Shown piece after piece: positions 10,727 to 60,729 of a stretch of 64,000 nucleotides of DNA; within the stretch, counting starts at the first letter, position 1, and each line of letters begins with the position of its first letter. A model generated the notes under the pieces. The model saw nothing but the letters and a program-made list of their open reading frames with translations. It had not been told where the DNA came from and ran no database searches. The DNA is from Lepidodermella squamata (lineage: Eukaryota > Animalia > Gastrotricha), in contig JBLDXI010000009.1 in the NCBI GenBank assembly GCA_047495785.1, positions 558,001 through 622,000 of the forward strand, given 5' to 3'. The position numbers were made by a program, and so were the translations under genes.

Positions 10727-11062
10727 TGAAAGTGAGAAAAGAGATCGACTGAATTTTCGAGACCTGAAATAGTCATTTCCCGAAGTTGATTCGATGTAAA
10801 TATCATGTAAATGGTTCATAATATGATGCGAGTGAGTGGTATAGGCTCGAAGCACATAAGCGAACCAACTCGATAACAGGCGAACATTGAATGCAATGGC
10901 GCTTGAAAAATAAAACAGACTAGAAAATACGCAGTCTAACATCCACGAACAGAATAAAGAATTCTCGTAAGCAGCCGATTGCGCTCGGGCTGATAACATT
11001 GTCATCAAGACGAATAGCATGGCATTAGCTCTGGCAGTTGATGTGAAGGGAAGATGAGACGA

Positions 11063-11140
11063 CTACAAGAAAAATCCGCCGAGAACACCGCAGAGGACCA
11101 GGATGAGGACAGCAACACAGATCATGATCATAATCTTTTT
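11063..11140 (-). CDS. STX1: STX1 terminal exon 6c: canonical short TM anchor
   Basis: TTACAG|[25 protein letters not shown]. Confidence 0.9.
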   Translation of the reverse strand, partial: KKIMIMICVAVLILVLCGVLGGFFL

Positions 11141-14100
11141 CTGTAATTCAAAACACGAAAAGGGACATTTAGCATATATTCATCAGTAAACTATCATTTC
11201 TACCACAATTTGTTACGTTGAGAAAAAGATCTCTACCCATCACCCATGCTGGTGCACCCGAAAATGTTACCTGTGTCGATATTGTTAGTTTTGCATTGGA
11301 AGCATGTGATTTTTTTGCGTTAATTGATATAATTGCACTCGTTTACAACATTTAGAGCTTCACTGGAAGCTCATGACGATTTACACGATTAACTTCTTTT
11401 TTTTTATCTGCATTATTATTGTTACAACATCGAAAGACGATGGTTGTGTGTTCTAATGATGTCACGTGGACGTCACTGAGGCGTGCGCCCGGTTACCACC
11501 ACCGAGATTAGCTACAGGTTCAACTTGCCTCCGGCGACGAAGGTAGATAACACAAGATCACCCATTTTCAATGAGTAATGGCATCATCGGAAACCGAAAA
11601 ACCCGCCGATAACAGCAGCAAGAATGACAATGAGCACCGTTACGCAAATGATGATCATTATCTTTTTCTGTAATGAGTCAGCGCAAAAACAACACGTGTC
11701 ATTAAAATAGTGGCGAACGAAAATGGAAATGTGAAAAATGTAAAATCGTTTGGCTACACACATCCAGCTGTTCTAGTATTCAGCCACCTTCTGCTCGCCC
11801 AGTCACGTTTCATCGATGAGGATGAAGGCGCGACGAGTGAACGACTGGATGTTCGCAGCAATTTTTTGAAAAAAAAAATTATAAAACAAAAGACAACACG
11901 GAACAAAGACAAACTTCGATGACTTTCATTATCCTGAATACAGTCAACTTTATCATCACTGATTTTTCTCGTTTTTTTTGTAGATCAACAAAGAGCTTCG
12001 CGATTCCATCAACAAAACTTCGCTCGTTCACCTCAGATATACAAAACGTTACAGAGGCGCGCGTGACACAGATCCGCCGTTTCATTCAAAAAACAGGCTG
12101 CAGACTTCACCAAGAATACTGATTACTATTTTGTTTCCACTATCATCCAGTATATAATATAACTCTGTAAATAGCTTCTTCTGCCAGTTGAAAAAGTGTC
12201 TAGCTTTGACATGGGACAATTTGTTACAAACATTATCACAACACGCATCGTATAACCAAAGGTAACACATGGAAATGCTTGGCCTGGGAAATCGTTTAAG
12301 CAGCGAATAGTAATTAGCTCAAATTAACAGTATGTACAGCGATCACCGAGTGAAATATTAAATTGCGCTGCTTTAGAGCTCAGAACCGATTATATTTTCA
12401 TATTATGTGTAAAAGCGAAAGTTATAGGCAAGCGTGTTCCGCGAAATTTCAAGGTGCATGTGAAAATAAATATTGAGAAAGCATTCATTCTCCTGGTAAT
12501 ATAGCAGATATTACTAAAAGCTCAGCAGTTTTGAGCACCCATTCGGCACTAAATCTACGATAAATCGCCGTGAAAAGTAGAGATTCAGCAGCCAGCTTGG
12601 TATGTACAATAAAATTATATCTGGTAAGTCATGTCGCGCGGCTTTGAAATAGATGGGCACCTGCGTTTAGAGCAAGCGGCACAAATTTACAACATGAACG
12701 GACGACAAAAGCAGCACATTTGGGAAACATTTAAAAGCAATACAACAGTGTCACAACACTGGGAACATGTCATCTACAAGTCGTAGGCTATTGAGTGATT
12801 AGGAGCGCATGCCGTTCAAGGCGACTATTTGAGGGTGTACTTTCCTTTGATGTTTTAAACATTATAAAAATATATTGTTTAGCGCTGATTCTGTTTGCCT
12901 TTGTAGTAGAATATATTTTATAGCTTTGATTGACTGAGTAAAAAACGGGAGATCAGCGACCAGCGGCCACAGTCGTAGAATTGGCCGACGCCCTGACTAT
13001 TGTCGTTGCTGCAGCTGCAACGGTGGTTGTACTTGCTGATGGTGTAGTTGTGATTGGGACTGGAACTGTGACTACAATGGTGACTGTAGATGCTGTCTCC
13101 GAACTGCCTTTATTACACACGCCAGTTTTGCAAACTTCAACGGCTATTACGATTGCAGCGATTATTAGAGCGGCTAGAATGACACTGACTATGATCGACC
13201 AGCATATGCACTTTTTCTACAGGCCAAACAGCGGTTGTGGTAGCAGCAGCAGCAGCAGGTTTGAATTGACATCGAACAACAACGGTGCAAAGACAGAATA
13301 GGAAAAACAAAAACACAAACAACATAAAGCTAAATTATCATTAAAAACTAAAAAAGCGCTAATTCAATTTGAAAATCCCAAAGCCATCGATAATTTCCGA
13401 ATCAATAGAAAATTCCCCATGCATCAATAATCGATTTCCAGTAAACAAATTACTCCCAACCTTATCCACCCTGAAATTAGCGTTAAATAATAGTAAAAGC
13501 AAAAAAATATAACATGCGTAAAATTAGAAAGACAGACATTTATATGACAGACAATTGACAACATGAGCGCATGCAAAAAGCGAAAAGCTGCATCATCGCG
13601 CTGGCACCCATCATGCTCCATTAGTTTTCCCGTACTCGCGCAAATTACTTTTAGCTTATTATCTTATTCGCCGATATGTAAACGAAAATGACAGCGACCG
13701 CCGTGACCAAAACGCCGGCGATGATTATAAGCAAAATCCAGAATTTCTAAACACAGTCTTCTGATTAGCATTATTATCGCGGCAAGATCTTGTTTTGCCA
13801 TTCAACGGGTTTACACGACAAATATCAATATTTATCACAACAAGGAACCTTATGATGTAAAAATGTCGACGGACCTTTCTAGCTTTACTCTGATATTTGA
13901 TGGCTTTTTTAGTATCTTTAACGGCGGTTTCGATATAATCTTGGCTTTTCAAGACGTTGCTTTCGATCTGATCCACGAGTTCCCCCTTAACGCCATTTAA
14001 CCAAACCGCGACGAAACGAAAAAAAAGAAAAATATTAGTTATATGACGAACCTTTCTTGCAGCACTCTGATAACGAAGGGCCTTTTTGGTGTCTTGCACG

Positions 14101-15914
14101 GCCGTGTCAACGTACTCGGCCGATTTTTCGACGTTGAAGTCGATCCGGTCAATCATTTCACCCTAAAACGAGTGCAATTCGAGTGTGGAACGATCAATCA
14201 GCCGTAGATGGAGATGTGCATTGACGGCGACGTCATAGAGATGAAATAAAAACACACAACAGAATTACATGATGCCAAAAGTTTCGGAATTTTGCTTTCT
14301 TTCTACCCGATTCAGTTGAACATGAAAAGTTTGCGTCTATTCAGGCAACAAACAGGCCATGATACAGTGCCAAGGTCTGGTGTGAGATTTCCACGGTCTC
14401 TAAAGCTAATATGTTGCCCTCGTTCTATACAACTGTGAAACAGTTGAGCTAGTAATATGCACTCGATTCATGCAACAGAGCGCGTGTGCCCTAATTAGCA
14501 TCGCCCTACCACGAGCTATCACAACGTTGATAGAGCCCAGGCGAAAGCCCGAGCTCAGTCTAACTATCATCGTGTAACTGCGTGTTTCTTGGCTATCAAT
14601 TGACGACCGGATGCTACAACGCGTGCCCGCCCGGGGAGGACCCTGATTGGGAAGAGAGGGAGGAAAAATGACTGGAGACAAACCTGACTTTCGACTAGCA
14701 TCGCCATATCCATGAACATATCGTGTAGTTCTTGGATAGACTTTTCTAATTTTTTGATATCACCATGTCGAGCCTCAATATCGCGAAGCATTTGCCGGGC
14801 TTGTTGAGTATCCATCAAAATCTATCAGAAAAAGCAATGCCATTTAGAAGCTGCCTTGATATCAATCCAGTTAACTTACGCCTTGGGTGAAGGCCTGAGG
14901 GGTACCTGACTCGATCATGGTTTCAATTTCGTCATCGGTAGTCGATTTCCCAGCTGTAATAAAGAAAATTGTCAAGTTTAGCAAAATGAAGCGTAAAGGA
15001 TATTGGACATCAATTAGGTACAACAAAAAAGGCCCCATAAGGGTCAAGCGCTAACTGTATTCGAGTTGACGTTTAATATTGGCTTTGCAGCGTTCTCTGA
15101 ACTCGCACTGGGCAGTGTTGTAATCGGAAAGCACTTCGCAGAGTAGCCGGTGCATGGTCATATGCTGGGCGGACGATCGAATGGCAGGGCAAAACAAAGT
15201 CACAGACAACAGCAAGGTATGAAAGAAAAAACAAACGATAAATACGATAACAACAAAAATAGGCAAGCAACGTAGTGATAAAATAATATAAATCAACTAA
15301 TGACTAAGACGGTACAACACAAGCTCTGAGGCGTTTAAAACCTACATATTTCCATCTGGCGTTTAATGCGCTCTTTACACCGATCACGGTAGTCTACTTG
15401 AGCCTTATTGTAGTCATTCATCACTTCGATGAACTTGCGCGAGATCGATGAATACTACATTTGGTGATTTGGGGGTTTCATATGAACAGCTTAATAATCA
15501 ATGGCGCAATTCAAGTGTTGGATAATTTACCTGAGTTTTACGAATACGGAAATCTGCGGACATTTTCTGTCCCTCTTCCTCCTTTTCGATGTTTTGCTCC
15601 ATCAGCTTCAATTTTAGCCGAACTTTGTTCGCGTTTTGCTTGATTTCTAGCATAATTTGGTCGAGCTCCTCCTTAACGCGGTCGTCGGTCTGAGGCGCGG
15701 AAAGGATGTCTGAGTGTTTCCGCTTCACCTCCTCGACTTGCTGTGCGATAGTGTCGATCATGCCGCGGATTTGCTTCACTTGCTCGAAGAAGTCTTCCAT
15801 GAAATTTGCGCCACCGCCCGCACCACCATCGTCCATTTGCACGTGGACATCGTCAGCGCCGAGCGCATCCTCTGCCTTGGCGGCAGCTTGTAGCTGTTGC
15901 AGCCTATCACGCAT
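11063..15914 (-). CDS. STX1: Syntaxin-1 with mutually exclusive internal exons and three alternative terminal TM exons
   Basis: Exons 15914-15531, [15454-15346 or 15164-15056], 14953-14880, 14821-14684, [14162-14052 or 13985-13875], [13216-12953 or 11667-11584 or 11140-11063]. All are GT-AG and phase-compatible. N-peptide MRDRL, Habc [14 protein letters not shown] motif [32 protein letters not shown]|GEMIDRI. Confidence 0.95.
11584..11667 (-). CDS. STX1: STX1 terminal exon 6b: canonical short TM anchor
   Basis: TTACAG|[27 protein letters not shown]. Confidence 0.9.
   Translation of the reverse strand, partial: KKIMIIICVTVLIVILAAVIGGFFGFR
12953..13216 (-). CDS. STX1: STX1 terminal exon 6a: TM plus ~60-aa Thr-rich extracellular tail
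   Basis: TAG|[87 protein letters not shown]. Phase 0, begins AAAAAG like 6b/6c. Not in the ORF track. Confidence 0.8.
   Translation of the reverse strand, partial: KKCICWSIIVSVILAALIIAAIVIAVEVCKTGVCNKGSSETASTVTIVVTVPVPITTTPSASTTTVAAAATTIVRASANSTTVAAGR
13875..13985 (-). CDS. STX1: STX1 alternative exon 5b (SNARE C-half), 111 nt
   Basis: AAG|[37 protein letters not shown]|GTCCGT. Confidence 0.88.
14052..14162 (-). CDS. STX1: STX1 alternative exon 5a (SNARE C-half), 111 nt
   Basis: TAG|[37 protein letters not shown]|GTTCGT. Confidence 0.9.
15056..15164 (-). CDS. STX1: STX1 alternative exon 2b (Hc helix), 109 nt
   Basis: CAG|[36 protein letters not shown]|GTTAGC; same length and phases as 2a. 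Confidence 0.88.
15346..15454 (-). CDS. STX1: STX1 alternative exon 2a (Hc helix), 109 nt
   Basis: TAG|[36 protein letters not shown]|GTAGGT. Confidence 0.9.
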
Positions 15915-16208
15915 TTTCAGCTAAAGCTAGAGATTCTATTGGGTGAGTAGGGGCTGCGGTGACGTAAAGATCGGTCCAGCCGAATTGGACGGGACTCGGA
16001 AATGCAGAAACGGGAGGTTGCTGTGAAAACAACTCGACGAGTTTAGGGTCGACAGCTTCGACGAAAACTCATAAAAGCAATCATAAAATACTAAAAAAAT
16101 ACAAATATGGAATGATAAATACGTCTTAATATCTTGAAAATGCGAGCTCCGAAAAAGGCGCAAGCTCGCATTGATGCATAGCAAATAGATGAAACTGCGA
16201 ATTGCAAG

Positions 16209-17570
16209 CTAGAAGGATGCAAAAGTTTGATTCATTGAGCTCTCATTGATCGCGCTGCTTTCAGAGCTGTTCGAAGTTAGGGGATTTAAAATATATTTCC
16301 ACGCAAGCCAAACCGCGATAGCGGTTAGCATGAGCATTAAAGTGACTAAAATGGCCCAACAAATTAATTTCTTCTGTTAGATTTAAAGAAAGAATTAAAA
16401 GAATTAAGCTTCAGAGAATATAAGCACAACCAAACCTTAATTAGCGAATTATGATAACGAGTTGCTTTTCGCAGAGCCTGTAGACCGCTATCCACGAAAT
16501 CAGCTGTCTTGTTCACTTGAGCCTCTATTCGGTCAACCACGTCACCCTTAATACATACATCAACGCAAGTCTATACGTTAGACTTTAGTGTTATCTACCT
16601 GATTTTCTATGAGAATCCTCATGTTTTGGAAAAGATCATGAAGTTCCAAGATAGACTGTTGCAATTTCTCTAGATCTTTGTGTCGCTCTTGGACATCTCG
16701 CAGCATTTGCATGCTTCTTTCTGGGTCGAGTAGCAACTTAACGCAATAAGGGCTGAACAAGAGTGAGACTTACAATTACAACTTACTCCCTTGATAAAAG
16801 GACTAAATCGGCTGGGATTGTCGACCAATTCTTCGATATCGGATTCTGACAAACGTTGACCAGCTGTTGAATCGGTCATAAACAATGTAATGCCAAAACA
16901 ATACAAGGATTTCATCGATGACCAACTTATTTCAAGCTGCCTGACAAATTTTTCCTTAGACTTGATACGATGCGCATCTTGAATTTCGTGATAAGCAACC
17001 ATCACATTGGAAAACGTCCGAGAAAGAGTGATATACTAGAGAAGGAGGAAATCGCTCTATGAACACGCGAGTAAAATTTCGAGATATAGGCAAACCTGTG
17101 CTTCTTTAATCCGGAAATTTGCACACGTCCTGTCCGGTGATTGCTCCATTTCATAGTTCATTTCTAGGAAAGAGCTAGCAAAATAGCCCAACAAAGAAGG
17201 GGAGTTTTACTTTTGAGAGCTCCCAAGACTCTGTTTGACGAATGTCTCATTTCATTCATATGGCTATCGACCTCAGCCGACAAATCTGAGCCAAACATCA
17301 TCGTTAGTGGGCGTTTGATTAGTTAAGGTTCTTACTATTGCTACTATTTGTGTCCACCAGCATGGCAGTTTGCAATTTCTTGATCAAATCGACAAGCTCG
17401 GTCATTCGATCAATTACACGAATCAAGAGCCTGACGTCTTCAAAAAACTCCTCCATGAAGAGCTCCCCCACGTCGACAGTGTAGTTGAATTTTTCCAGGT
17501 CGTCATCACTACGACCTGAATCGTCGCCACGTCTAGCGGCCTCGCGCAACTCATCTGTGCGGTCCCGCAT
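16209..17570 (-). CDS. Syntaxin-1-like paralog b (8 exons), TM plus tail with N-glycosylation sequons
   Basis: Exons 17570-17336, 17285-17211, 17163-17096, 17035-16927 (109 nt), 16863-16787, 16736-16599 (138 nt), 16546-16436 (111 nt), 16373-16209. Motifs MRDRTDEL, FMEEFFEDV, ERHKDLEKLQQSILELHDLF...ENQ|GDVVDRIE. Confidence 0.9.
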
Positions 17571-17729
17571 GCTTCATCGATGTTAAAATGAAGCCGGCTA
17601 AAGATCGGAAAATAATGCGAAAAAATGCTGGAAAACATCGATTCGACTACGAATCAGCATCGCTTTCTCTTGAAAATACAAAAATGATCTTGCAAGCCTT
17701 CCTTAAACTATAATATTATCATGACGCAG

Positions 17730-19082
17730 TCAGCTAGGCGTAGTGAGCGTCGGCGGCATTGCCGTATTGAAAATCGAGTATGGAACTGGTGCGACGGCAG
17801 TGACGTCTCCGGTTTTCCGAAAAATCGGCGTAAGATAATGTAGGGCGGTCAAAACAACGGCACACACCGCCAAGAGAATAAATACAATGAGTATAGCCAG
17901 GCAGCAACAACGCTTCTGTAACAACAACACGGCGGTTAAAAAATCGACTCTCTCTATAAAATTAATCGCCAATCGTCACTTGCTTTGGTGATTCGTCTTT
18001 TGTGGACTTCAGCTTTTGCAGTTTCTTTCGTCGCAGATTCAACCAAATGATCAGCTCTATCGATAAGTGCTTCGATCTACAACAGCAACACTGTTGGCGT
18101 TTAAATGATGCCGATGAAACGTACGTTATCGATTTTTTCTCCAGTGGCCTCAATCAACAACTGGTACTCGATAAATATATCCTTCAAAAGTCGAATATCG
18201 TTCTCTAGCTTAACAAGATCCTCGTGTCGCCTTTGCACAATTTTGAGGATAGACTGCTGATCAGTTTCGAAAAAACCGCCGCTAGATGTTGCAACCTCCA
18301 GAAAATAACGAGGGGCCATGACAGGATCGATTACAACATTGCGACCAGCTATTAGCAAGGCTTAAGAATTCGCCGTAAATCATACATTAGACTCATACTT
18401 TTCAAGAGAACATCGCGATGGGTCCTTTCGGCCGACTTCTTCAAAAACTCGTCCCTCGTGGTATTAAAGTACTCCATGGTATCAGCCGCTGTCCTTTTCA
18501 AGGTGTCAATATGCCACTGGAACATGCCAGCCTCCCGAATACTACCAGTAGAGTCCGCTGTTTGCGCAGATCTCGATGCTAGATTAATAGCCATTAGGAA
18601 GAGATGGTCATAATAATGAGAAGTAAGAAACCCTCTAAGTCCTTGATCTTCGACCACGCTTGAGAAAATAGCTGCGAAATTTCATCGTGGCACCGAGTGA
18701 TCTCATCAAGTGCGACTGTTGGTAACATTTGGGGAAACAATAGCGGGCTAATATAATTAAAGAAACCTTTGGTTGGCGGTGTCTTCATTAGGTAATCATC
18801 CTGGGGGGTTTTCACTCGATCCACCAACGACCGAATGAATTCGAAATCCTGACGAATCGAGCTAACTTGAGACAAAAAAGCGCGGAAAGCATTAGATGAG
18901 CCCAGAAGAGGAGTGCCAGGAGTTGGAAAGACTGTTTCATCATGCGATGAGCTGCTAATTTCCGAAAGGCTCTTCTAAAATGAATTAATTTAAATGAGCA
19001 AGACGTGATTAGATGAACCAACAGCCTGTATGTTTGACTGCCGAGCGGCCTGCAGCTCGATTAGGCGATCTTTAACCACCAT
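17730..19082 (-). CDS. Divergent syntaxin-like paralog c (multi-exon, GC-AG last intron)
   Basis: MVVKDRLIELQ N-peptide; RRHEDLVKLENDIRLLKDIFIEYQLLIEATGEKIDN|IEALIDRA SNARE-like motif; terminal exon KRCCCLAILIVFILLAVCAVVLTAL (17915-17730). Confidence 0.8.
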
Positions 19083-21399
19083 AATTTTAGAAAGCACCAG
19101 CCAAATCACATTACGCTGACATAGCTAACATGAAATCCTACACTTAAGACAAACTTAAGCATGAATGTTAAGTGATTAATAAGAAAATGCGTAGGGTCAG
19201 AGTACGTTGCACTCCAATTACAAAATAACCATAAACCACTCTGGGTGATTAAACAAGACGCCCACCAAAAAGGCGCAAGGTAGAAGAGTCACCGCGAAAA
19301 AACATAAGCTCTTGATATGCATAAATTATTAGGGCTTGTAAACATGATCTCATCAACATAAGCGAGAGATGCCACCTAAATAGTAGTGGGAGCGATATTA
19401 AATTAGGGTAATATATAAGTAAGCAAGTGTGTAGACGTGAATCTACATGATACGCGTTCTGAATGCTGGTGATTAAAGTAGCAGCTATGTTTTTACGACG
19501 GTAGCTGTTCCATCTGCTAAAAAAAATCGTATTAGGTGAGAAATAATTCACGAACTCGACGCATCATCAACTGCAATTATTTCCGAGCAAGTATATAAGA
19601 ATTGAAAATGGCAATTCTCATTTTATATTTTGGGAATTATAAAGTTTAATGAACGTAGTAGACTTTAGCATGAGTGGTTGGGTGAACTGCTGTACGCGAA
19701 TATAAATACGCAAGCCGGTAGAAGAGGTTCCACATTCTCGGCAGCAGCGGCGGCGGCGTCGGCATCAGAACAAGAAAAAACTGAGTCAGCAGAAAAGTCG
19801 AATAAGACGACTACCACACATGGGCACGCGCATACGCACAAACACTGACGGTCACATATGAATAATATAGTGCAGATATAAGCAAACGAATAGACCATAC
19901 ACATGCATGCACACACATAATAACATATTATAAAACATCAATACATGCATGCATCTAGCCCTACATATTCAAACGAGAAGCCGGAAGAGGGAAGGCTATG
20001 GTCGATAGCATGCGCACACGAATGTGATGTCAGACACTGCGTGGCGAATATCGAATATATATATACATATATATATATTATGGCAAAGCAACGCGCAGCA
20101 TAGAATAACAGAAACGAATATTGCAAAAGGAGACACACAAGACTTTTACAAGCAACGGCCTGCGCTTGACAATATAATGCGACAGCGACCGGCGAACGAT
20201 CGATAATGCCGCTCATGCGGATCGATAGTTGCTTTCGGTCGTGAGCATAACTCATATTCGCATAACGGCACGAAGTATTCACATTGCGTGAGTGAAATGT
20301 AATACATAATACGGCATAAATTTGAATATTTCAGCTGAATAAGAACAATTAGAAAATAACAATTCAATATAATAACTTGCCGAGGATCGCGAGGACAGCA
20401 TTTAATAAAGCCCGCAAAAAATAGTTGTCATCGTTAACTTGAGCACCTCTAATTGAAGTGGTTTCGAATCACCGCCCGCAGTTATCCGACCAATCACGAC
20501 TCAATGCTACAATCACACTCCAAAAGTGTACAATTATCAAATATCAAAAATATTGTAGAATAATTTAGTTAGCTCACTCTTATCTTTCCTAAAAACAAGG
20601 TTCAAATATCTGACCAGCGTGAACAAAACAAATCACGTCTAAGAAGCTCATGGTGACCCTATCGAGTCGCATTGTTAAATGCCACGCATTATCTCTCGCT
20701 TGGACACCCGAAAATGCCAAAAATCTGACTGAATCGTAGTCGAAAATATCATGGTCCATAAAAACAACAATAACTTGCCTCATATAAATATTTAGCGTAA
20801 CGGCTATTATCAATCAATAGCTATTTGCACGACAAAGCTTTACGTAAATATAATGTTAAATTCAACATCCAACGAACAACGAATAGGAAAGAGCGCAGAT
20901 TCCTTCTAATGGGTTTCATTAATTCACTGTTATGGCTACGCATTATAAGTCACTTGGTTTAGGCTTGACTTAGACAGACAGTATGTTATCTTTTTTAAGG
21001 TAAAGCGCCGGATAGTTCGGGAAGGGAAGTTGTAATTTTTACTGAAGTACAGCATGCGTCTGATCCTATATAACGCAAGGACCAGTCCGAAAATCAGGTA
21101 CCACGCATCTTCAGCGTTAAATGTTGGATTGGGCTAAAAAACCGTCTTCAAATCGTCTCAACTTGACAAACTAAATGGAGTTTTTAAATGAGAACAAGAG
21201 CGGCATACTTAATTCTTCCTGTAGATATCAATCAAACATTAGGTTTATCAGAGCCACCAACCACCAATTACAATTGACAATAAATAAGTAACTTGATGTA
21301 TGGTGGATTAACATAATTGACGTTTATATCATAGTCATGTACATGTTGCTTCGAAAGAATAGTTGAACAGAGAACAGTGAAATTGGATATCTTTCATTA

Positions 21400-22026
21400 G
21401 GGGAATTCGCGGAGATAGACGACGGGCAATGGCGTACCTTTCGCCTAATGCACCTTTGTGACTGATGTGACAGATTGTGACAGAATGTATGCCTAATGAT
21501 ACCAAGAGCGCTATCCTTCCACAGTTCAACGATTTTCTTTATCGCAATGATTAAGGCAGTTGTCTGCTGGCTTCGAGGTCAGAAGCACTGGCTTTGCACT
21601 TCTGGCTTCAGTTCGTGGCAGAAAGTAAATAAGCATGGGCGAAAACAAAAATAGGAAGCCAAACAGCGATTTCAAGTTCCGGTTTTCTCACCCATATATT
21701 CTAGCTACAATGAATACGTGCCAGTAGCTACCTTTTTGAGAAGCCTCCGAGGAAAAGAATAAAGGGCCGAAATCGCTTCATCTCTCCAAGAATTTCCCGA
21801 TTCCTGCTTTCGTACGATGTCCAACCAACCAGTGGAATTGTCACGATACTAACCTGAGAGTTATAATTCACTCGCAGATATTTTACGCAAAGCGCGAAGC
21901 GCGAATAACGCGTAAGTCAGCAGTTGAGCTTTGGCGTTTGAGGTTCCAGATTTCGCGTCCCAAGCAACTGATTTTCATTGGATTCGTGAAAAGTTGGTGA
22001 AGAATAAAGCAATACATAAAAATTAA
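21400..22026 (+). pseudogene. Possible decayed spliced coding fragment (weak thioester-protein/A2M-like resemblance)
   Basis: ...FEVRSTGFALLASVRGRN|YNEYVPVATFLRSLR across a GTAAAT...TTCTAG intron (~21626-21704); four in-frame stops downstream. Confidence 0.25.
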
Positions 22027-22384
22027 TATGTATTTAACAAAAAAGAAAACTAATAAAAATAATTCTGCTCGAATACCACTATAATGTCACTATTTTTACC
22101 GCATGCGAAAATTATGTATAATCGAACTTCGCAGGTGTGGTTCCTGGTCTTTTTTCCTGGTCAACCGTGGCCAGATTTTTCATTCAGATGTCAGACACCT
22201 CTACCGAATGTTATGCACAAACTTCGGGGTATAACGCCCTGAATAATGGGCATTTTTTGGAATTGAATTCGTCCATGTCCGAGGCATAATGGAGAATTAA
22301 ATTCACACCGTTGACCAGGTCCAGACTGGAGACTGGTGATCGGTGAGAAGTACGAATAGTAATCAGAGTAGTACTCATAAACCC

Positions 22385-22910
22385 AATGACTAGCCGTCCC
22401 CCATGCGCCTTAACTCAAGACAGAATGACATATCTCGATGCAAGAATCCCCTGCAGTCATCAATGTATCAAACATTTTGAAACATCAAACATCACTCACA
22501 GAAAACGTCCAAGCGATAACATCCACGATGTAACCTGTGTTCATGATCTACCAGGAAATATTTCGAATATCTAACATCTTGAAGCCCCTCCCGCAATTCC
22601 CATTCCATCCCTAAATAATCTGGATGATGCAAAAGACATCGAATTAGAATTTTCTAAATTGTAAATATTCTTACTATTTACTACTTACCTCTCTCAAAAT
22701 ACCTAAAATCCTTGTTGTGTCTTCCTCTCTTTCCACTTCATCCGCCTATATCCTAATTCTTATTTATGTCTAACAGACCTTTGTTGATGACTTCTACTTT
22801 TAATTGTTATTTGTTTTGTCTTGATAGATGCCTGAAGATGACGTTGAGAATAACGTCGAAACGTTGCAAAAGAATTTAAAAGATAGAAGAATAAAAGCGC
22901 TTTCAATAAA
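22385..22910 (+). mobile_element. Penelope-like retroelement 3' remnant (frameshifted GIY-YIG endonuclease C-terminus plus pLTR-like end)
   Basis: Frameshifted pieces TSRP...NDISRCKN...KHFETS...TRKYFEYL...PSLNNLDD follow the PLE GIY-YIG C-terminal pattern. They are followed by CTGAAGATG...CGAAACGTT and AATAAA signals. Confidence 0.6.
22829..22868 (+). ncRNA. Minimal type-I hammerhead ribozyme motif (PLE-type)
   Basis: TGC-CTGAAGA-T-GACGTT(GAGAAT)AACGTC-GAAA-CGTT-GCA: core boxes, 6-bp stem II, palindromic ACGT helix III, 3-bp stem I. Confidence 0.7.
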
Positions 22911-24157
22911 GTTATGCCGAATTATTACCAATGAAACATAAAGCTGTTCACCTTCGAGCGAGGGGCCAAAATCGTTTGTAACAACCAATCGTTAGCTTAA
23001 TAAAGACCCCGAGCTCAAAACAAAATCAGCTGGCATGTGCTCGCTGGAGCTCGTTCGACGCTAGCTCGCCTAGGCTTGCATCGATTGCTAGCCGTTGCCG
23101 CTTTTTCCAAACAGCTTCGCTTCGCTCGATTATACAGAAAATCCGTATAGGATATCACTAATGGCAGTTTGCTCTTACGATATTTTAAAGGTTTTGTCTT
23201 TTTGCTTATTTGCTATTCTCTTTTTGACTTGGACTTAATCGTATTCGCAGTTTCCAAGTAACAAGTAACAGCGGTGAACACGCCGTGGAAAACTGCAATC
23301 CGCGACATTTGCGAATACTGTTTAGGGCCACTTTCCTAAAATCCACGCAAATACAGACCAAGATATTGTGCCCAACAATTTTTTAAAAGCCTAAGCTTCG
23401 GGGACGTGTTTCTCTTTTTATTACACATGTTGATAAAAACGTGTCCACAAAATATGGGTTTCATCAGTAATTTACGCTGTGGTCATATAGCCTGTATCAC
23501 ATTAACATACCCCGATCCGTCACAACATTTTGACTGTCACATACTAGTCATGGCCGGATTCAGAGTGAAAACAGGAATGAACAACATTACAAAATCACTA
23601 GGCCAAAAAGTGCGACAATTTACATAGAGATCATACGAGTGAGATGGATATAACAACATTTTCGAGAAGTTTCAGTTAGAAAATTTACTGGCGACCTCAG
23701 CAAACCGCCCGAGAAGTTGACGGACTGAAAGTTGAACCATGAGAGAGAGAGATCAGGCGAAGTTCAGTCAAAGAAACCGTAGCACAAAATACGGACGAAT
23801 TGGCATAGCAACATGGATTACTCATCGTTATGGTTTAGCCGAAGACATACCTCAATAAAAAGCGCTTTTGATCTACACCACTATCGGCAAATATTTCAAT
23901 TAAAGAAACTTATTAACGAAATGAAACATGACTGTTTGAGGCATCACCGGCCAATCTTGGTGCAAATAACAAAACTTGAACAAAATAATTGAGAAGGCTC
24001 GTATTTTTACATCAGGATTTATCCAAAACTTCTGACAGCTAACCCGACACTCATCACTCATTCAATCATGGAAATTCTAATAAGTTCTAAGACGTACAGA
24101 AAACTGTTCGCGATATAAAACGGCCGTTGCGGTTACCTGCACACAGTGCAAGGTCGG

Positions 24158-25343
<1,186 letters not shown>

Positions 25344-58767: not shown

Positions 58768-60729
58768 ATGACGGCGGCGAAAACATCTGACGCCACTGTT
58801 GCCGTGCTGTATGCTACGCAGACTGGTGTCTCGAAGTCGATTGCCGAAAAGATTGTTGAGCTATTATCAGGAATTTCTATCGCCAGCATTAATATTCATA
58901 GCTTTGACGAAATATCAGTCGAGCAGATGTGTTCATTTCGCATCGCCATTATCGTTTGTAGTAGCACTGGTCAAGGCGACCCTCCTGAATCCGCTTCAAA
59001 GCTTTTTCGGCAATTAAGACGCTTGCTATCTGAAGATAAAAAACGACTTGATCATTTACGCTTCACTATTCTTGGCCTAGGTGATTCTAACTACCAGACG
59101 TTTGGAGCGTTTCCAAAAACTTTACATAAGACAATATTGAGCCTCGGAGCAACTACTTTTTACGATTTCGCTCTTGCAGACGACGCGGTTGGGCTTGACG
59201 CAGTTGTTGAACCCTGGTTGGCTGGAATAGCATCCGCAACTTCAAAAGAGCTTGGCGCTAACCCGCTTGATAAAGTAGAAGACTTATCAATCAATTTGAA
59301 AGCAATGAGTGGCATCATTGACGGCAAGCACGTCTTGACTGTTGATCACGACATCAAAATTCCGGAAAAGGGTCTAAAGCTGCCGTCGCTTCCGCCAGCG
59401 GCTCTCACAGTTTCGTTCGGCAAGGACGAAACAACTTCAGAAATAACTGGTGAAGATTTTGCGAAACAATACTACAAGCAAAATTATTTTGGTTCAAGTT
59501 CCCCAGTCGTGCACTTGCCAGTATTGGGTGCGAAAGTTCTAACTTCTCCATCTGCGTTGAAACCTGTTTATGAAATTATACTAAATGGCTCTGAGCTACC
59601 CACTGTGGGAGATCTCCAACCAGGAGATTCCTTCAGTCTTTTGTGTCCAAACGATTCTAATGAAGTTGCTCAGCTTATTGAGAAGCTTGGACTTGCTGAT
59701 GTAGCCGATTTCTCTATGGAATTGTCACAGAAGGTTCCGAGCCACTTGCAATGCAAGGAAACGGCTTTGACGCTACGGTATTGCTTACAATATTGCCTCG
59801 ATATCCGTTCAGCGCCGAAAAAAGCCTTTCTGGCTTTGATGGCATCACTGGCGACTGATGCAAATGAAAAATTTGAGTTGCAATACTTGTCAAGCTTCGA
59901 GGGCAGCCAAGATTTCTCGAGTTATATCAGAGAGGCACAACTTTCTTTGTTGGACCTATTTCTGCTTTTCCCTTCAGTGAAATTGACGGCTTCTCAGCTG
60001 TTGGATAACCTGCCGCCTCTGAAGCCGCGGTCCTACTCCTTAGCAAATTGGCCATCATGCTCGCCTGAAAAATTACTGCGCTTCGCGTTTTCCGAAGTGT
60101 TCTTGCCGCAAGTTGACTCTCGGCGTCAATACGACCGGCATGGGGTTTGCACGCATTTCTTGTTGAGTGCAGTCACTTCTATAAATAATGGGACACCTGT
60201 CTCCTTACCGGTATTCACTAGAACCGTTCAAGCCTTTCGCTTGCCAGCTGAAATATCAACCCCGCTAGTGTTTGTAAGTGCTGGAACCGGCATAACGCCC
60301 TACTTGGGATTTTTGGAATATCTTGCTGACAAGAAGGCGAAGGGTGAATCTTTAGCGCCAGTTTGGCTTTTCCACGGTTGCCGTAATAAGGACGATGACT
60401 TTGTTTATCGCGCAGAGGTTGAAAAATGGGTCAACAATGGATTGATTGCGAAACTAGTGTTGGCTTGTTCTCGGCAGGATCCGCTTCAAGAAAGTGGCTC
60501 TCGGACTTACGTCCAACATAAATTGCTTGAAAACGGGAAAGATTTGATCGATTTGAATCCACCTGCTATAATTTATGCTTGTGGGGACGCGGCAAGAATG
60601 GCTCCTTCGTTACGTGAAGCTCTCATTGCTATTGTCAAAGAGCACACGGGCGTTTCGCAAGAGGAGGCCCTCTCCGTGTTCAAGCAGTGGACGAAAAGCG
60701 GTCGCTACAAGGAAGATGTTTGGCGATAA
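58768..60729 (+). CDS. MTRR: Methionine synthase reductase (intronless diflavin reductase)
   Basis: YATQTG, STGQGDPP, LGLGDSNY, MTRR-type DDAVGLDAVVEPW, RSYS, AGTGITP, terminal DVW. Confidence 0.92.
   Translation: MTAAKTSDATVAVLYATQTGVSKSIAEKIVELLSGISIASINIHSFDEISVEQMCSFRIAIIVCSSTGQGDPPESASKLFRQLRRLLSEDKKRLDHLRFTILGLGDSNYQTFGAFPKTLHKTILSLGATTFYDFALADDAVGLDAVVEPWLAGIASATSKELGANPLDKVEDLSINLKAMSGIIDGKHVLTVDHDIKIPEKGLKLPSLPPAALTVSFGKDETTSEITGEDFAKQYYKQNYFGSSSPVVHLPVLGAKVLTSPSALKPVYEIILNGSELPTVGDLQPGDSFSLLCPNDSNEVAQLIEKLGLADVADFSMELSQKVPSHLQCKETALTLRYCLQYCLDIRSAPKKAFLALMASLATDANEKFELQYLSSFEGSQDFSSYIREAQLSLLDLFLLFPSVKLTASQLLDNLPPLKPRSYSLANWPSCSPEKLLRFAFSEVFLPQVDSRRQYDRHGVCTHFLLSAVTSINNGTPVSLPVFTRTVQAFRLPAEISTPLVFVSAGTGITPYLGFLEYLADKKAKGESLAPVWLFHGCRNKDDDFVYRAEVEKWVNNGLIAKLVLACSRQDPLQESGSRTYVQHKLLENGKDLIDLNPPAIIYACGDAARMAPSLREALIAIVKEHTGVSQEEALSVFKQWTKSGRYKEDVWR

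Follow-up and report, generated by a model that had tools for sequence, protein, structure and literature searches.

The stretch of DNA analysed here (the window) comprises 64,000 nucleotides (nt) of contig JBLDXI010000009.1 from the gastrotrich Lepidodermella squamata. Its positions 11000-19200 (minus strand) were read in six frames and inspected for splice sites. Three complete genes of the syntaxin-1 family were found on the minus strand, co-oriented between 19082 and 11063 in the order c, b and STX1 (Table 1). Their models are made of open frames joined across GT-AG introns and one GC-AG intron, and no further syntaxin-like exons were seen elsewhere in the 64-kb window. An earlier note on this DNA had described three co-oriented genes with spacers of 159 and 294 nt, and both its coordinates and its numbers proved exact. 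The c-b-STX1 cluster is a conserved and expressed tandem array of plasma-membrane-type (syntaxin-1-like) Qa-SNARE genes in a compact invertebrate genome, and the favoured explanation as a whole, inferred parts included, is considered probable.

STX1 starts at the ATG at 15914 and encodes a product of 297-359 amino acids (aa), which ends at 13651, 12953, 11584 or 11063 depending on the terminal exon used. Its variable exons comprise two mutually exclusive pairs (2a/2b and 5a/5b) and a set of alternative terminal exons. The picture of STX1 was corrected in one respect, its alternative terminal exons being four and not three. A long tail after the membrane anchor is encoded only by exon 6-2, with 6-3 and 6-4 stopping 0-6 residues past the anchor. 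Exons 4, 6 and 7 of b (109, 138 and 111 nt) match STX1 exons 2, 4 and 5 in both length and phase, as had been noted.

Table 1. Syntaxin-1-family genes of the window and associated features. Positions are those of the window unless a contig is named.
Feature	Position	Strand	Description
Paralog c	17730..19082	-	7 exons, 344 aa; ATG 19082, stop ends 17730
c exons	19082-19023, 18974-18767, 18715-18632, 18578-18399, 18348-18125, 18076-17984, 17915-17730	-	gene model
c terminal exon	17730..17915	-	KRCCC anchor and 36-aa tail starting HYLTPIF; contiguous in RNA contig
c-b spacer	17571..17729	-	159 nt, c stop to b ATG; unbroken within one 2179-nt RNA contig
Paralog b	16209..17570	-	8 exons, 325 aa; ATG 17570, stop ends 16209
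b exons	17570-17336, 17285-17211, 17163-17096, 17035-16927, 16863-16787, 16736-16599, 16546-16436, 16373-16209	-	gene model
b terminal exon	16209..16373	-	KKLICW anchor and 29-aa tail (KYILNPL...); runs into 3' untranslated region to 16115 in RNA contig
b-STX1 spacer	15915..16208	-	294 nt, b stop to STX1 ATG; contains b 3' and STX1 5' untranslated regions
AG acceptor, probable spliced-leader trans-splice site of STX1	16091..16092	-	RNA contig has a loose end at 16092 in run X1
STX1 coding region	11063..15914	-	exon 1 15914-15531, exon 3 14953-14880, exon 4 14821-14684, plus alternative exons
STX1 exon 2a	15346..15454	-	109 nt; partner of 2b in a mutually exclusive pair; joined to exon 3 (14953/15346) and exon 1 (15454/15531), depth 130
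STX1 exon 2b	15056..15164	-	109 nt; partner of 2a in a mutually exclusive pair; joined to exon 3 (14953/15056, depth 90) and exon 1 (15164/15531, depth 85 in X1 and 5.5 in X3)
STX1 exon 5a	14052..14162	-	111 nt, C-terminal half of SNARE motif; contig depth 211, joint to exon 4
STX1 exon 5b	13875..13985	-	111 nt, alternative to 5a; depth 5.6 in X1; kept in species 2
STX1 terminal exon 6-1	13651..13746	-	anchor and ~9 residues; depth 8.5 in X1; kept in species 2
STX1 terminal exon 6-2	12953..13216	-	KKCICW anchor and 61-aa tail; depth 113
STX1 terminal exon 6-3	11584..11667	-	canonical KKIMIIIC-type anchor, no tail
STX1 terminal exon 6-4	11063..11140	-	canonical KKIMIMIC-type anchor, no tail
Candidate spliced-leader RNA gene	L004:2446-2465	-	ribosomal DNA unit, between 5S and small-subunit rRNA, downstream of large-subunit rRNA (Rfam)
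Candidate spliced-leader RNA gene	L005:787-806	-	adjoins 5S rRNA and the large-subunit rRNA end (Rfam)

STX1 is orthologous to neuronal syntaxin-1 and evolves slowly. Its exon 1 matched the Pfam Syntaxin family (PF00804) with an E-value of 8e-18 and, among PDB entries, squid s-syntaxin (E 4e-36) and rat STX1A (~1e-29). The b protein aligned to STX1 in blastp with 35% identity over 292 aa (E 6e-63) and the c protein with 26-28% identity over ~300 aa (E 2e-22), and these full-length alignments covered the whole N-terminal domain of both paralogues. When searched exon by exon for the Habc domain (PF00804), one b exon scored 1.9e-4, which is below the curated cut-off, and the c exons had no match. 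The SNARE exons of b and c had squid and rat syntaxin-1 as their best PDB matches (E 2e-7 for c), followed by yeast Sso1/2. Since b and c lie next to STX1 and some intron positions are common to them, local duplication is favoured as their origin.

An exhaustive HMMER search with b exon 1 returned only two relatives, and their contigs were examined. The metagenome assemblies L002 and L003 both represent a single species (hereafter species 2), and the Logan contig L001 comes from a third species (species 3). In species 2 (L002/L003), a c-like gene, 187 nt, a b-like gene, 256 nt and STX1 follow one another, with the STX1 gene carrying exons 2a/2b, 5a/5b and all four terminal exons, 6-2 among them. 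L001 covers the final two exons of c, then a spacer of 200 nt and the greater part of b; at L001:494-550 a GC donor follows a 93-nt exon of equal length, at the position homologous to that in c of the window. Conservation extends to at least two further species, one with the whole of c-b-STX1 and the other with the c-b junction.

The three genes have diverged at very different rates. Between the window and species 2, STX1 shows 94% identity; across species, orthologues of b are 40-48% and those of c 29-45% identical. For a housekeeping enzyme of the window, the best match is a metagenome protein taken to be from species 2, with an identity of only 52%, which indicates that the two species are not close. 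The phylogenetic tree recovered a c clade (support 100/99), STX1 together with an amphioxus STX1B fragment (84/88) and a weak b clade (65/52), with terminal branches of 0.4-1.5 for b and c and of 0.02-0.04 for STX1. By branch length, b and c evolve at least 10 times faster than STX1. The duplications are accordingly older than the divergence of the three species, and neither paralogue has been lost despite its fast evolution. Compared in this way, b and c are old tandem duplicates. Intron turnover across the array has been heavy (window 11063-19082 against L002:6054-12750), with 6 vs 2 introns in c and 7 vs 4 in b; exon 1 of the species-2 STX1 is split by an extra intron, and the positions of the mutually exclusive exons and of the terminal exons are unchanged.

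Protein searches with STX1 exon 1 returned only a species-2 fragment and an amphioxus fragment, exon-sized queries being prone to miss full-length syntaxins, which are excluded by the length window of the word-indexed search. For the same exon, the ESM Atlas gave only generic syntaxin clusters and no useful taxon. The tail exon used as a query found no match, and such a blank is uninformative. The earlier note had called the module lineage-specific, which may hold within the scope of these exon-level searches, as they led only to the two related species.

We have then compared the functional elements of the three proteins. A predicted N-peptide of the Sec1/Munc18-binding type (Asp-Arg-Thr/Leu-x-x-Leu near residue 3-8; Asp-Arg-Leu/Thr-x-Glu-Leu in b and c) is present in all of them (MRDRLQQL in STX1, MRDRTDEL in b and MVVKDRLIEL in c) and is kept in the orthologues of species 2 and 3. 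As read from the alignment, the heptad layers -7 to +8 are all hydrophobic or small in STX1, b and c. The zero-layer Gln is present in STX1 (ESQGE), in b (ENQGD) and in the species-2 b (EQQGE). The c protein has no Gln at the zero layer in any of the three species, with Thr in the window (EATGE) and Gly in species 2 and 3. Judged by its sequence, c is a Qa-derived protein and not a canonical Q-SNARE. All isoforms and paralogues have a single C-terminal transmembrane helix placed directly after KK or KR, the best 19-residue hydropathy windows scoring 2.65-3.42.

The anchor helix is ~23-25 residues long and starts with KKCICW in exon 6-2, KKLICW in b and KRCCC in c. In each of the three it is followed by a polar tail. 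That of exon 6-2 has 61 aa, is rich in Thr, Ser, Ala and Val (36% Ser+Thr), contains two Cys and begins with Val-Cys-x-x-Gly-x-Cys. The b tail is of 29 aa (34% Ser+Thr) and has three N-x-S/T sequons, and the c tail is of 36 aa (25% Ser+Thr) with 6 Pro. The earlier note had seen a Cys-containing anchor start and a Ser/Thr-rich tail in all three genes, which the sequence confirms.

Tails were kept in all seven orthologous tailed exons of the three species, those of 6-2 measuring 61 and 64 residues, those of b 29 and 28, and those of c 36, 44 and 29. The species-2 tail of 6-2 is 50% Ser+Thr and shares with the window both the KKCICW start and the Val-Cys-x-x-Gly-x-Cys sequence. A different juxtamembrane motif was found in b and c (Tyr, Leu/Met, Ser/Thr, Pro/Ser, any residue, Phe), its instances being HYLTPIF, YYLSPVF, YYMTSLF, KYLSPLF and KYILNPL; it is absent from STX1 exon 6-2. 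Beyond this motif the tails cannot be aligned between species and are still rich in Ser, Thr and Pro. It had been proposed that b and c derive from the tailed STX1 isoform. The anchor start agrees with this in the case of b (ICW, and CCW in species 2), being closer to 6-2 than to 6-3/6-4, but the tails do not, with the b/c motif missing from 6-2 and the Cys-x-x-Gly-x-Cys sequence found in 6-2.

Expression was followed in public sequencing runs, namely the RNA runs X1 and X3 (the latter smaller) and the DNA run X2, whose assembled contigs were placed on window positions 12986-18985. Exons 6-3 and 6-4 lie outside this interval, so that RNA depth covers 6-1 and 6-2 among the terminal exons. The X2 DNA was unspliced and of even depth. 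In X1, all seven introns of b (47-63 nt) were seen as joints. The RNA contig pieces of c spanned 18947-18767, 18348-18125 and 17915-17336, and its last intron (17916-17983) is the GC-AG one, confirmed by the joint 17915/17984 in X1. This joint links ...ITK to KRCCC, the same place as the junction between STX1 exon 5 and the anchor exon. Both alternatives of STX1 exon 2 were seen in X1, with joint depths of 85-130, and exon 5a was the dominant form over 5b (211 vs 5.6).

The tailed STX1 isoform (6-2) is a major one in the sampled RNA. The joint from exon 5a to 6-2 (14052/13216) had a depth of 92 in X1 and 5.4 in X3, and exon 6-2 itself reached 113 vs 109-223 in the bins holding constitutive exons, contig depth being a rough measure that serves poorly for isoform share. 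Paralogues b and c were found on one 2179-nt contig with a depth of 63, roughly a third of the STX1 contig depth. For the earlier note, unexpressed paralogues or spliced-out tails would have spoken against its reading. RNA contigs cover c, b and STX1, and since they run without a break through the terminal exons of b, c and 6-2, with no onward splicing, the tails are not spliced away and stand in the mature mRNA. The note's suggestion of a specialised secretory cell type gained no support: an operon would mean co-expression with STX1, and b and c reach about a third of the STX1 depth in whole-sample RNA.

The reads also revealed polymorphism. Read-window differences were synonymous in 10 cases and non-synonymous in 3, all three of the latter in the b terminal exon. 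The difference at 13094, in the tail part of exon 6-2, is synonymous; those at 16268 and 16342-16343 in the b terminal exon concern a Thr of the anchor and, within the first sequon, a Ser, and this sequon remains one. Overall, 3.4 kb of X2 showed 29 substitutions and 8 gaps relative to the window (~1% of positions), among them a deletion of 6 nt at 13242, shortly upstream of exon 6-2, and the X1 RNA carries many of the X2 alleles. This suggests that the reads come from a different strain or haplotype than the assembly. The readings of the genes as pseudogenes and of the tails as chance open reading frames were rejected in view of the conservation, the expression and the polymorphism pattern.

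The contigs further bear on how the array is transcribed. The STX1 mRNA contig extends 5' of the ATG to 16092, where an AG acceptor lies after a T-run, and then continues with 20 bases that are not genomic at this place. The b mRNA contig ends at 16115, ~23 nt before the STX1 acceptor. No copy of the 20-mer occurs anywhere in the window, the 48 kb upstream included. In public metagenome contigs it had two exact matches (L004 and L005), each followed by AG|GTATGT, in which GTATGT is a consensus 5' splice donor. L004 and L005 are environmental DNA, not proven to be of the window's species, and both matches adjoin 5S rRNA (Table 1). Linkage to 5S rRNA of a short exon carrying its own donor is how spliced-leader RNA genes are classically arranged. 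In L004, a second copy of the 20-mer with one mismatch lies 30 nt upstream, and positions 1-2004 hold a nearly complete 18S rRNA. The folds of the two candidate leader genes were unremarkable (z-scores of -1.8 and +0.9) and were not relied on. Rfam gave no match on the window, the leader matched no Rfam family, and its sequence had no match in a literature search.

The 5S-linked leader, the conserved spacers of 150-300 nt and the contig bridging c and b together make an operon with trans-splicing most likely, and c-b-STX1 is probably such a unit, its messages being separated by spliced-leader trans-splicing. The array would resemble the spliced-leader operons known from nematodes, tunicates, flatworms, rotifers and chaetognaths in its co-oriented genes, its spacers of 150-300 nt, the unpaired AG acceptor ~23 nt past the end of the upstream mRNA and the ~22-nt leader whose candidate gene adjoins 5S rRNA. 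It differs from them in that its leader matches no Rfam family and that the operon is deduced from contigs. The co-transcription suggested in the earlier note is accordingly plausible, with a contig that runs from c through the 159-nt spacer into b and a leader-like 20-mer at the unpaired acceptor of STX1. The ~5 kb located 5' of c (19100-24150) lacks convincing open reading frames and is of low complexity and TG/CA-rich around 19650-20300; it may be the candidate promoter region of the c-b-STX1 unit.

The tails were then set against what is described for other SNAREs. In human SNAREs the anchor mostly stops no more than one residue from the lumenal phosphate plane, and the named exceptions are Sec20, VAMP5 and VAMP7, with no syntaxin-1-type protein among them (PMC13748404). 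A polar stretch after the anchor is shared with these proteins: the Sec20 tail of plants and fungi exceeds 100 residues and has a signal for retention in the endoplasmic reticulum, VAMP5 has ~22 residues after its anchor and VAMP7 a conserved disulfide-bonded curl (PMC13748404). They belong to other SNARE classes or compartments, none being an exocytic Qa-SNARE of the syntaxin-1 family, and they have neither a mucin-like Thr-rich tail nor alternative terminal exons. The same differences hold for yeast Tlg2, a Qa-SNARE that reportedly has a dispensable lumenal domain of ~60 residues. A literature search aimed at syntaxins with extracellular or mucin-like tails yielded no precedent for a protein of the syntaxin-1 family.

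Within the family itself, STX1 is like rat STX1A, squid s-syntaxin and UNC-64 in its N-peptide, its Habc domain, its zero-layer Gln and the KKIMI-type anchor of exons 6-3 and 6-4. Exon 6-2 sets it apart by adding a Thr-rich tail of 61-64 residues, the described proteins ending a few residues past the anchor (for human SNAREs, PMC13748404). In Caenorhabditis elegans unc-64, the alternative last exons 8a and 8b change only the anchor, differ in tissue use and are not interchangeable (PMC4946901). Alternative anchor exons are thus common to both genes, STX1 of the window differing by its four anchors and two exon pairs. Paralogues b and c compare with STX2, 3, 4, 11 and 19, which are diverged syntaxin-1 paralogues with the same domain order; they differ in being tandem neighbours of STX1 with some shared intron positions. 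STX11 and STX19 have S-acylated, Cys-rich C-termini, of which the KRCCC anchor start of c is reminiscent. Syntaxin 3 has no lumenal or extracytoplasmic domain (PMC2063918), unlike the tailed b and c.

The length of the tails is relevant to membrane insertion, for which the post-translational tail-anchor route has a limit of ~30 residues after the membrane segment (PMC2173004). This limit is exceeded by 6-2 (61 residues, 64 in species 2) and by c (36 and 44, with 29 in species 3); the b tails (29 and 28) are borderline, and STX1 6-1, 6-3 and 6-4, with 0-9 residues after the membrane, are within it. Because the 61-residue STX1 tail is longer than the limit, its insertion would probably take another route. 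With the N-terminus in the cytosol and the basic residues on the cytosolic side, the tails would cross the endoplasmic reticulum membrane and end outside the cell. Going by composition, they are predicted to bear mucin-type O-glycans and, in some cases, N-glycans, so that the Thr/Ser runs and N-x-S/T sites, once glycosylated, would form a short mucin-like stalk. Apical sorting can be directed by lumenal glycans (PMC2063918). The tails would most likely act on surface placement or residence time, through glycan-dependent sorting, retention or clustering, and a secondary effect on fusion-pore opening is possible. The main alternatives to this role are a tuning of pore opening and an inhibitory function of c.

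Several observations weigh against this explanation of the array and its tails. The topology, glycosylation and localisation of the tails, and the SNARE pairing of the proteins, are predictions from sequence. Past the first 6-12 residues, only the presence, length and composition of the tails are conserved. The sequons are not kept across species (three in b of the window, zero in the species-2 b), and N-glycosylation of the tails may be incidental. The weakness of contig depth as a measure of isoform share bears on the standing of 6-2 in the same direction. As to the operon, a contig spanning c and b is no proof of a single transcript, and the spliced-leader junction was seen in one contig only, the leader being found on STX1 and not on b or c. 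These last two points would also suit genes with their own promoters in the short spacers, in which case the c-b contig would reflect overlapping untranslated regions or read-through and the 20 bases a distant 5' exon or an assembly chimera. We consider this unlikely, given that the 20-mer is missing from the window and its 48 kb upstream, that it occurs exactly and with a GT donor beside 5S rRNA in the ribosomal DNA spacers of two environmental contigs, and that the short spacers are conserved in three species. The tails could also be neutral, arising from run-on to the first stop in slippage-prone DNA rich in Thr codons, with b and c decaying and kept because they lie within the STX1 transcription unit. 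The tails are indeed unalignable past their first few residues, as is the 6-2 tail DNA between species; b and c evolve very fast, and an open frame of 61 codons arose by chance in ~6% of shuffles of the tail DNA (0.06 per species). Such neutrality is nonetheless very improbable in view of the similar tail length and composition in 7 of 7 orthologous exons, the two distinct conserved juxtamembrane motifs, the intact SNARE layers and N-peptides of b and c, the mostly synonymous polymorphism and the abundance of the tailed STX1 isoform.

Other alternatives accept the tails as functional and assign them a different role. According to one, b, c and 6-2 would be inhibitory or would tune fusion kinetics, the polar C-terminus resisting pore opening and the non-Gln zero layer yielding complexes that form or recycle poorly. 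The absence of the zero-layer Gln from c in three species agrees with such a brake, and so would two earlier results: polar residues added to the C-terminus of synaptobrevin-2 reportedly impair exocytosis, and the ionic layer is reported to aid disassembly by NSF. The zero-layer Gln of b is canonical, however, and 6-2 is apparently a major isoform of an essential gene. Engineered C-terminal tags are moreover tolerated in syntaxin 3, as seen with a surface-exposed double-myc/His tag (PMC2063918), and we judge a braking role unlikely. It was also considered that b and c might have left the plasma membrane for an internal compartment (secretory granules or lysosome-related organelles, for example), with the lumenal Tyr-Leu-Ser-Pro-x-Phe motif as a sorting or retention signal. 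The conserved motif on the lumen side, common to b and c and absent in 6-2, would fit this, as would the strong divergence of b and c from STX1 and the precedent of Sec20, whose long lumenal tail carries a retention signal in plants and fungi (PMC13748404). On the other hand, the SNARE exons of b and c best match, among solved structures, plasma-membrane types (syntaxin-1, then Sso1/2), and their long anchors (~23-25 hydrophobic residues) are like those of plasma-membrane SNAREs, which makes an internal location rather improbable. More far-reaching, and put forward here as a tentative possibility, is that the exocytic syntaxin-1 family of an animal lineage has become one of surface glycoproteins: a major STX1 isoform and two always-tailed paralogues would display a mucin-like stalk, serving as a cue for sorting, retention or clustering or recognised by a partner outside the cell, with c, devoid of the zero-layer Gln, acting as a regulator.

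The array matters for several reasons. Syntaxin-1 is among the best-studied fusion proteins, with an anchor believed to stop at the outer leaflet. In current models the anchor C-terminus helps to open the fusion pore, and syntaxins count as classical tail-anchored proteins. The tailed isoform and the paralogues offer natural test cases of how much extracytoplasmic mass an exocytic t-SNARE tolerates, of the insertion route taken once the tail-anchor length limit is exceeded, and of whether glycans sort or cluster a SNARE. Were the surface-glycoprotein possibility true, these proteins would be a natural exception to exocytic Qa-SNAREs as purely tail-anchored proteins with no extracytoplasmic part, and a natural experiment on C-terminal anchor mass versus fusion. 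The preferred reading of an expressed and conserved Qa-SNARE array has a further consequence at the level of the genome, in that a probable operon ends in an essential neuronal gene preceded by its own fast-evolving duplicates, which bears on whether operons constrain or release the evolution of paralogues.

As for the surroundings of the array, the next minus-strand gene beyond the 5 kb located 5' of c is CaM-kinase-like (~24158-25343). On the plus strand, positions 58768-60726 encode a single-exon methionine synthase reductase of 653 aa, which is 52% identical to a metagenome protein and 33% identical to its best named relatives (sea urchin, vertebrates and fungi). With named matches of only 33%, this genome appears isolated among annotated ones. 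Other genes of the window are often long single exons as well (770, 499 and 420 aa).

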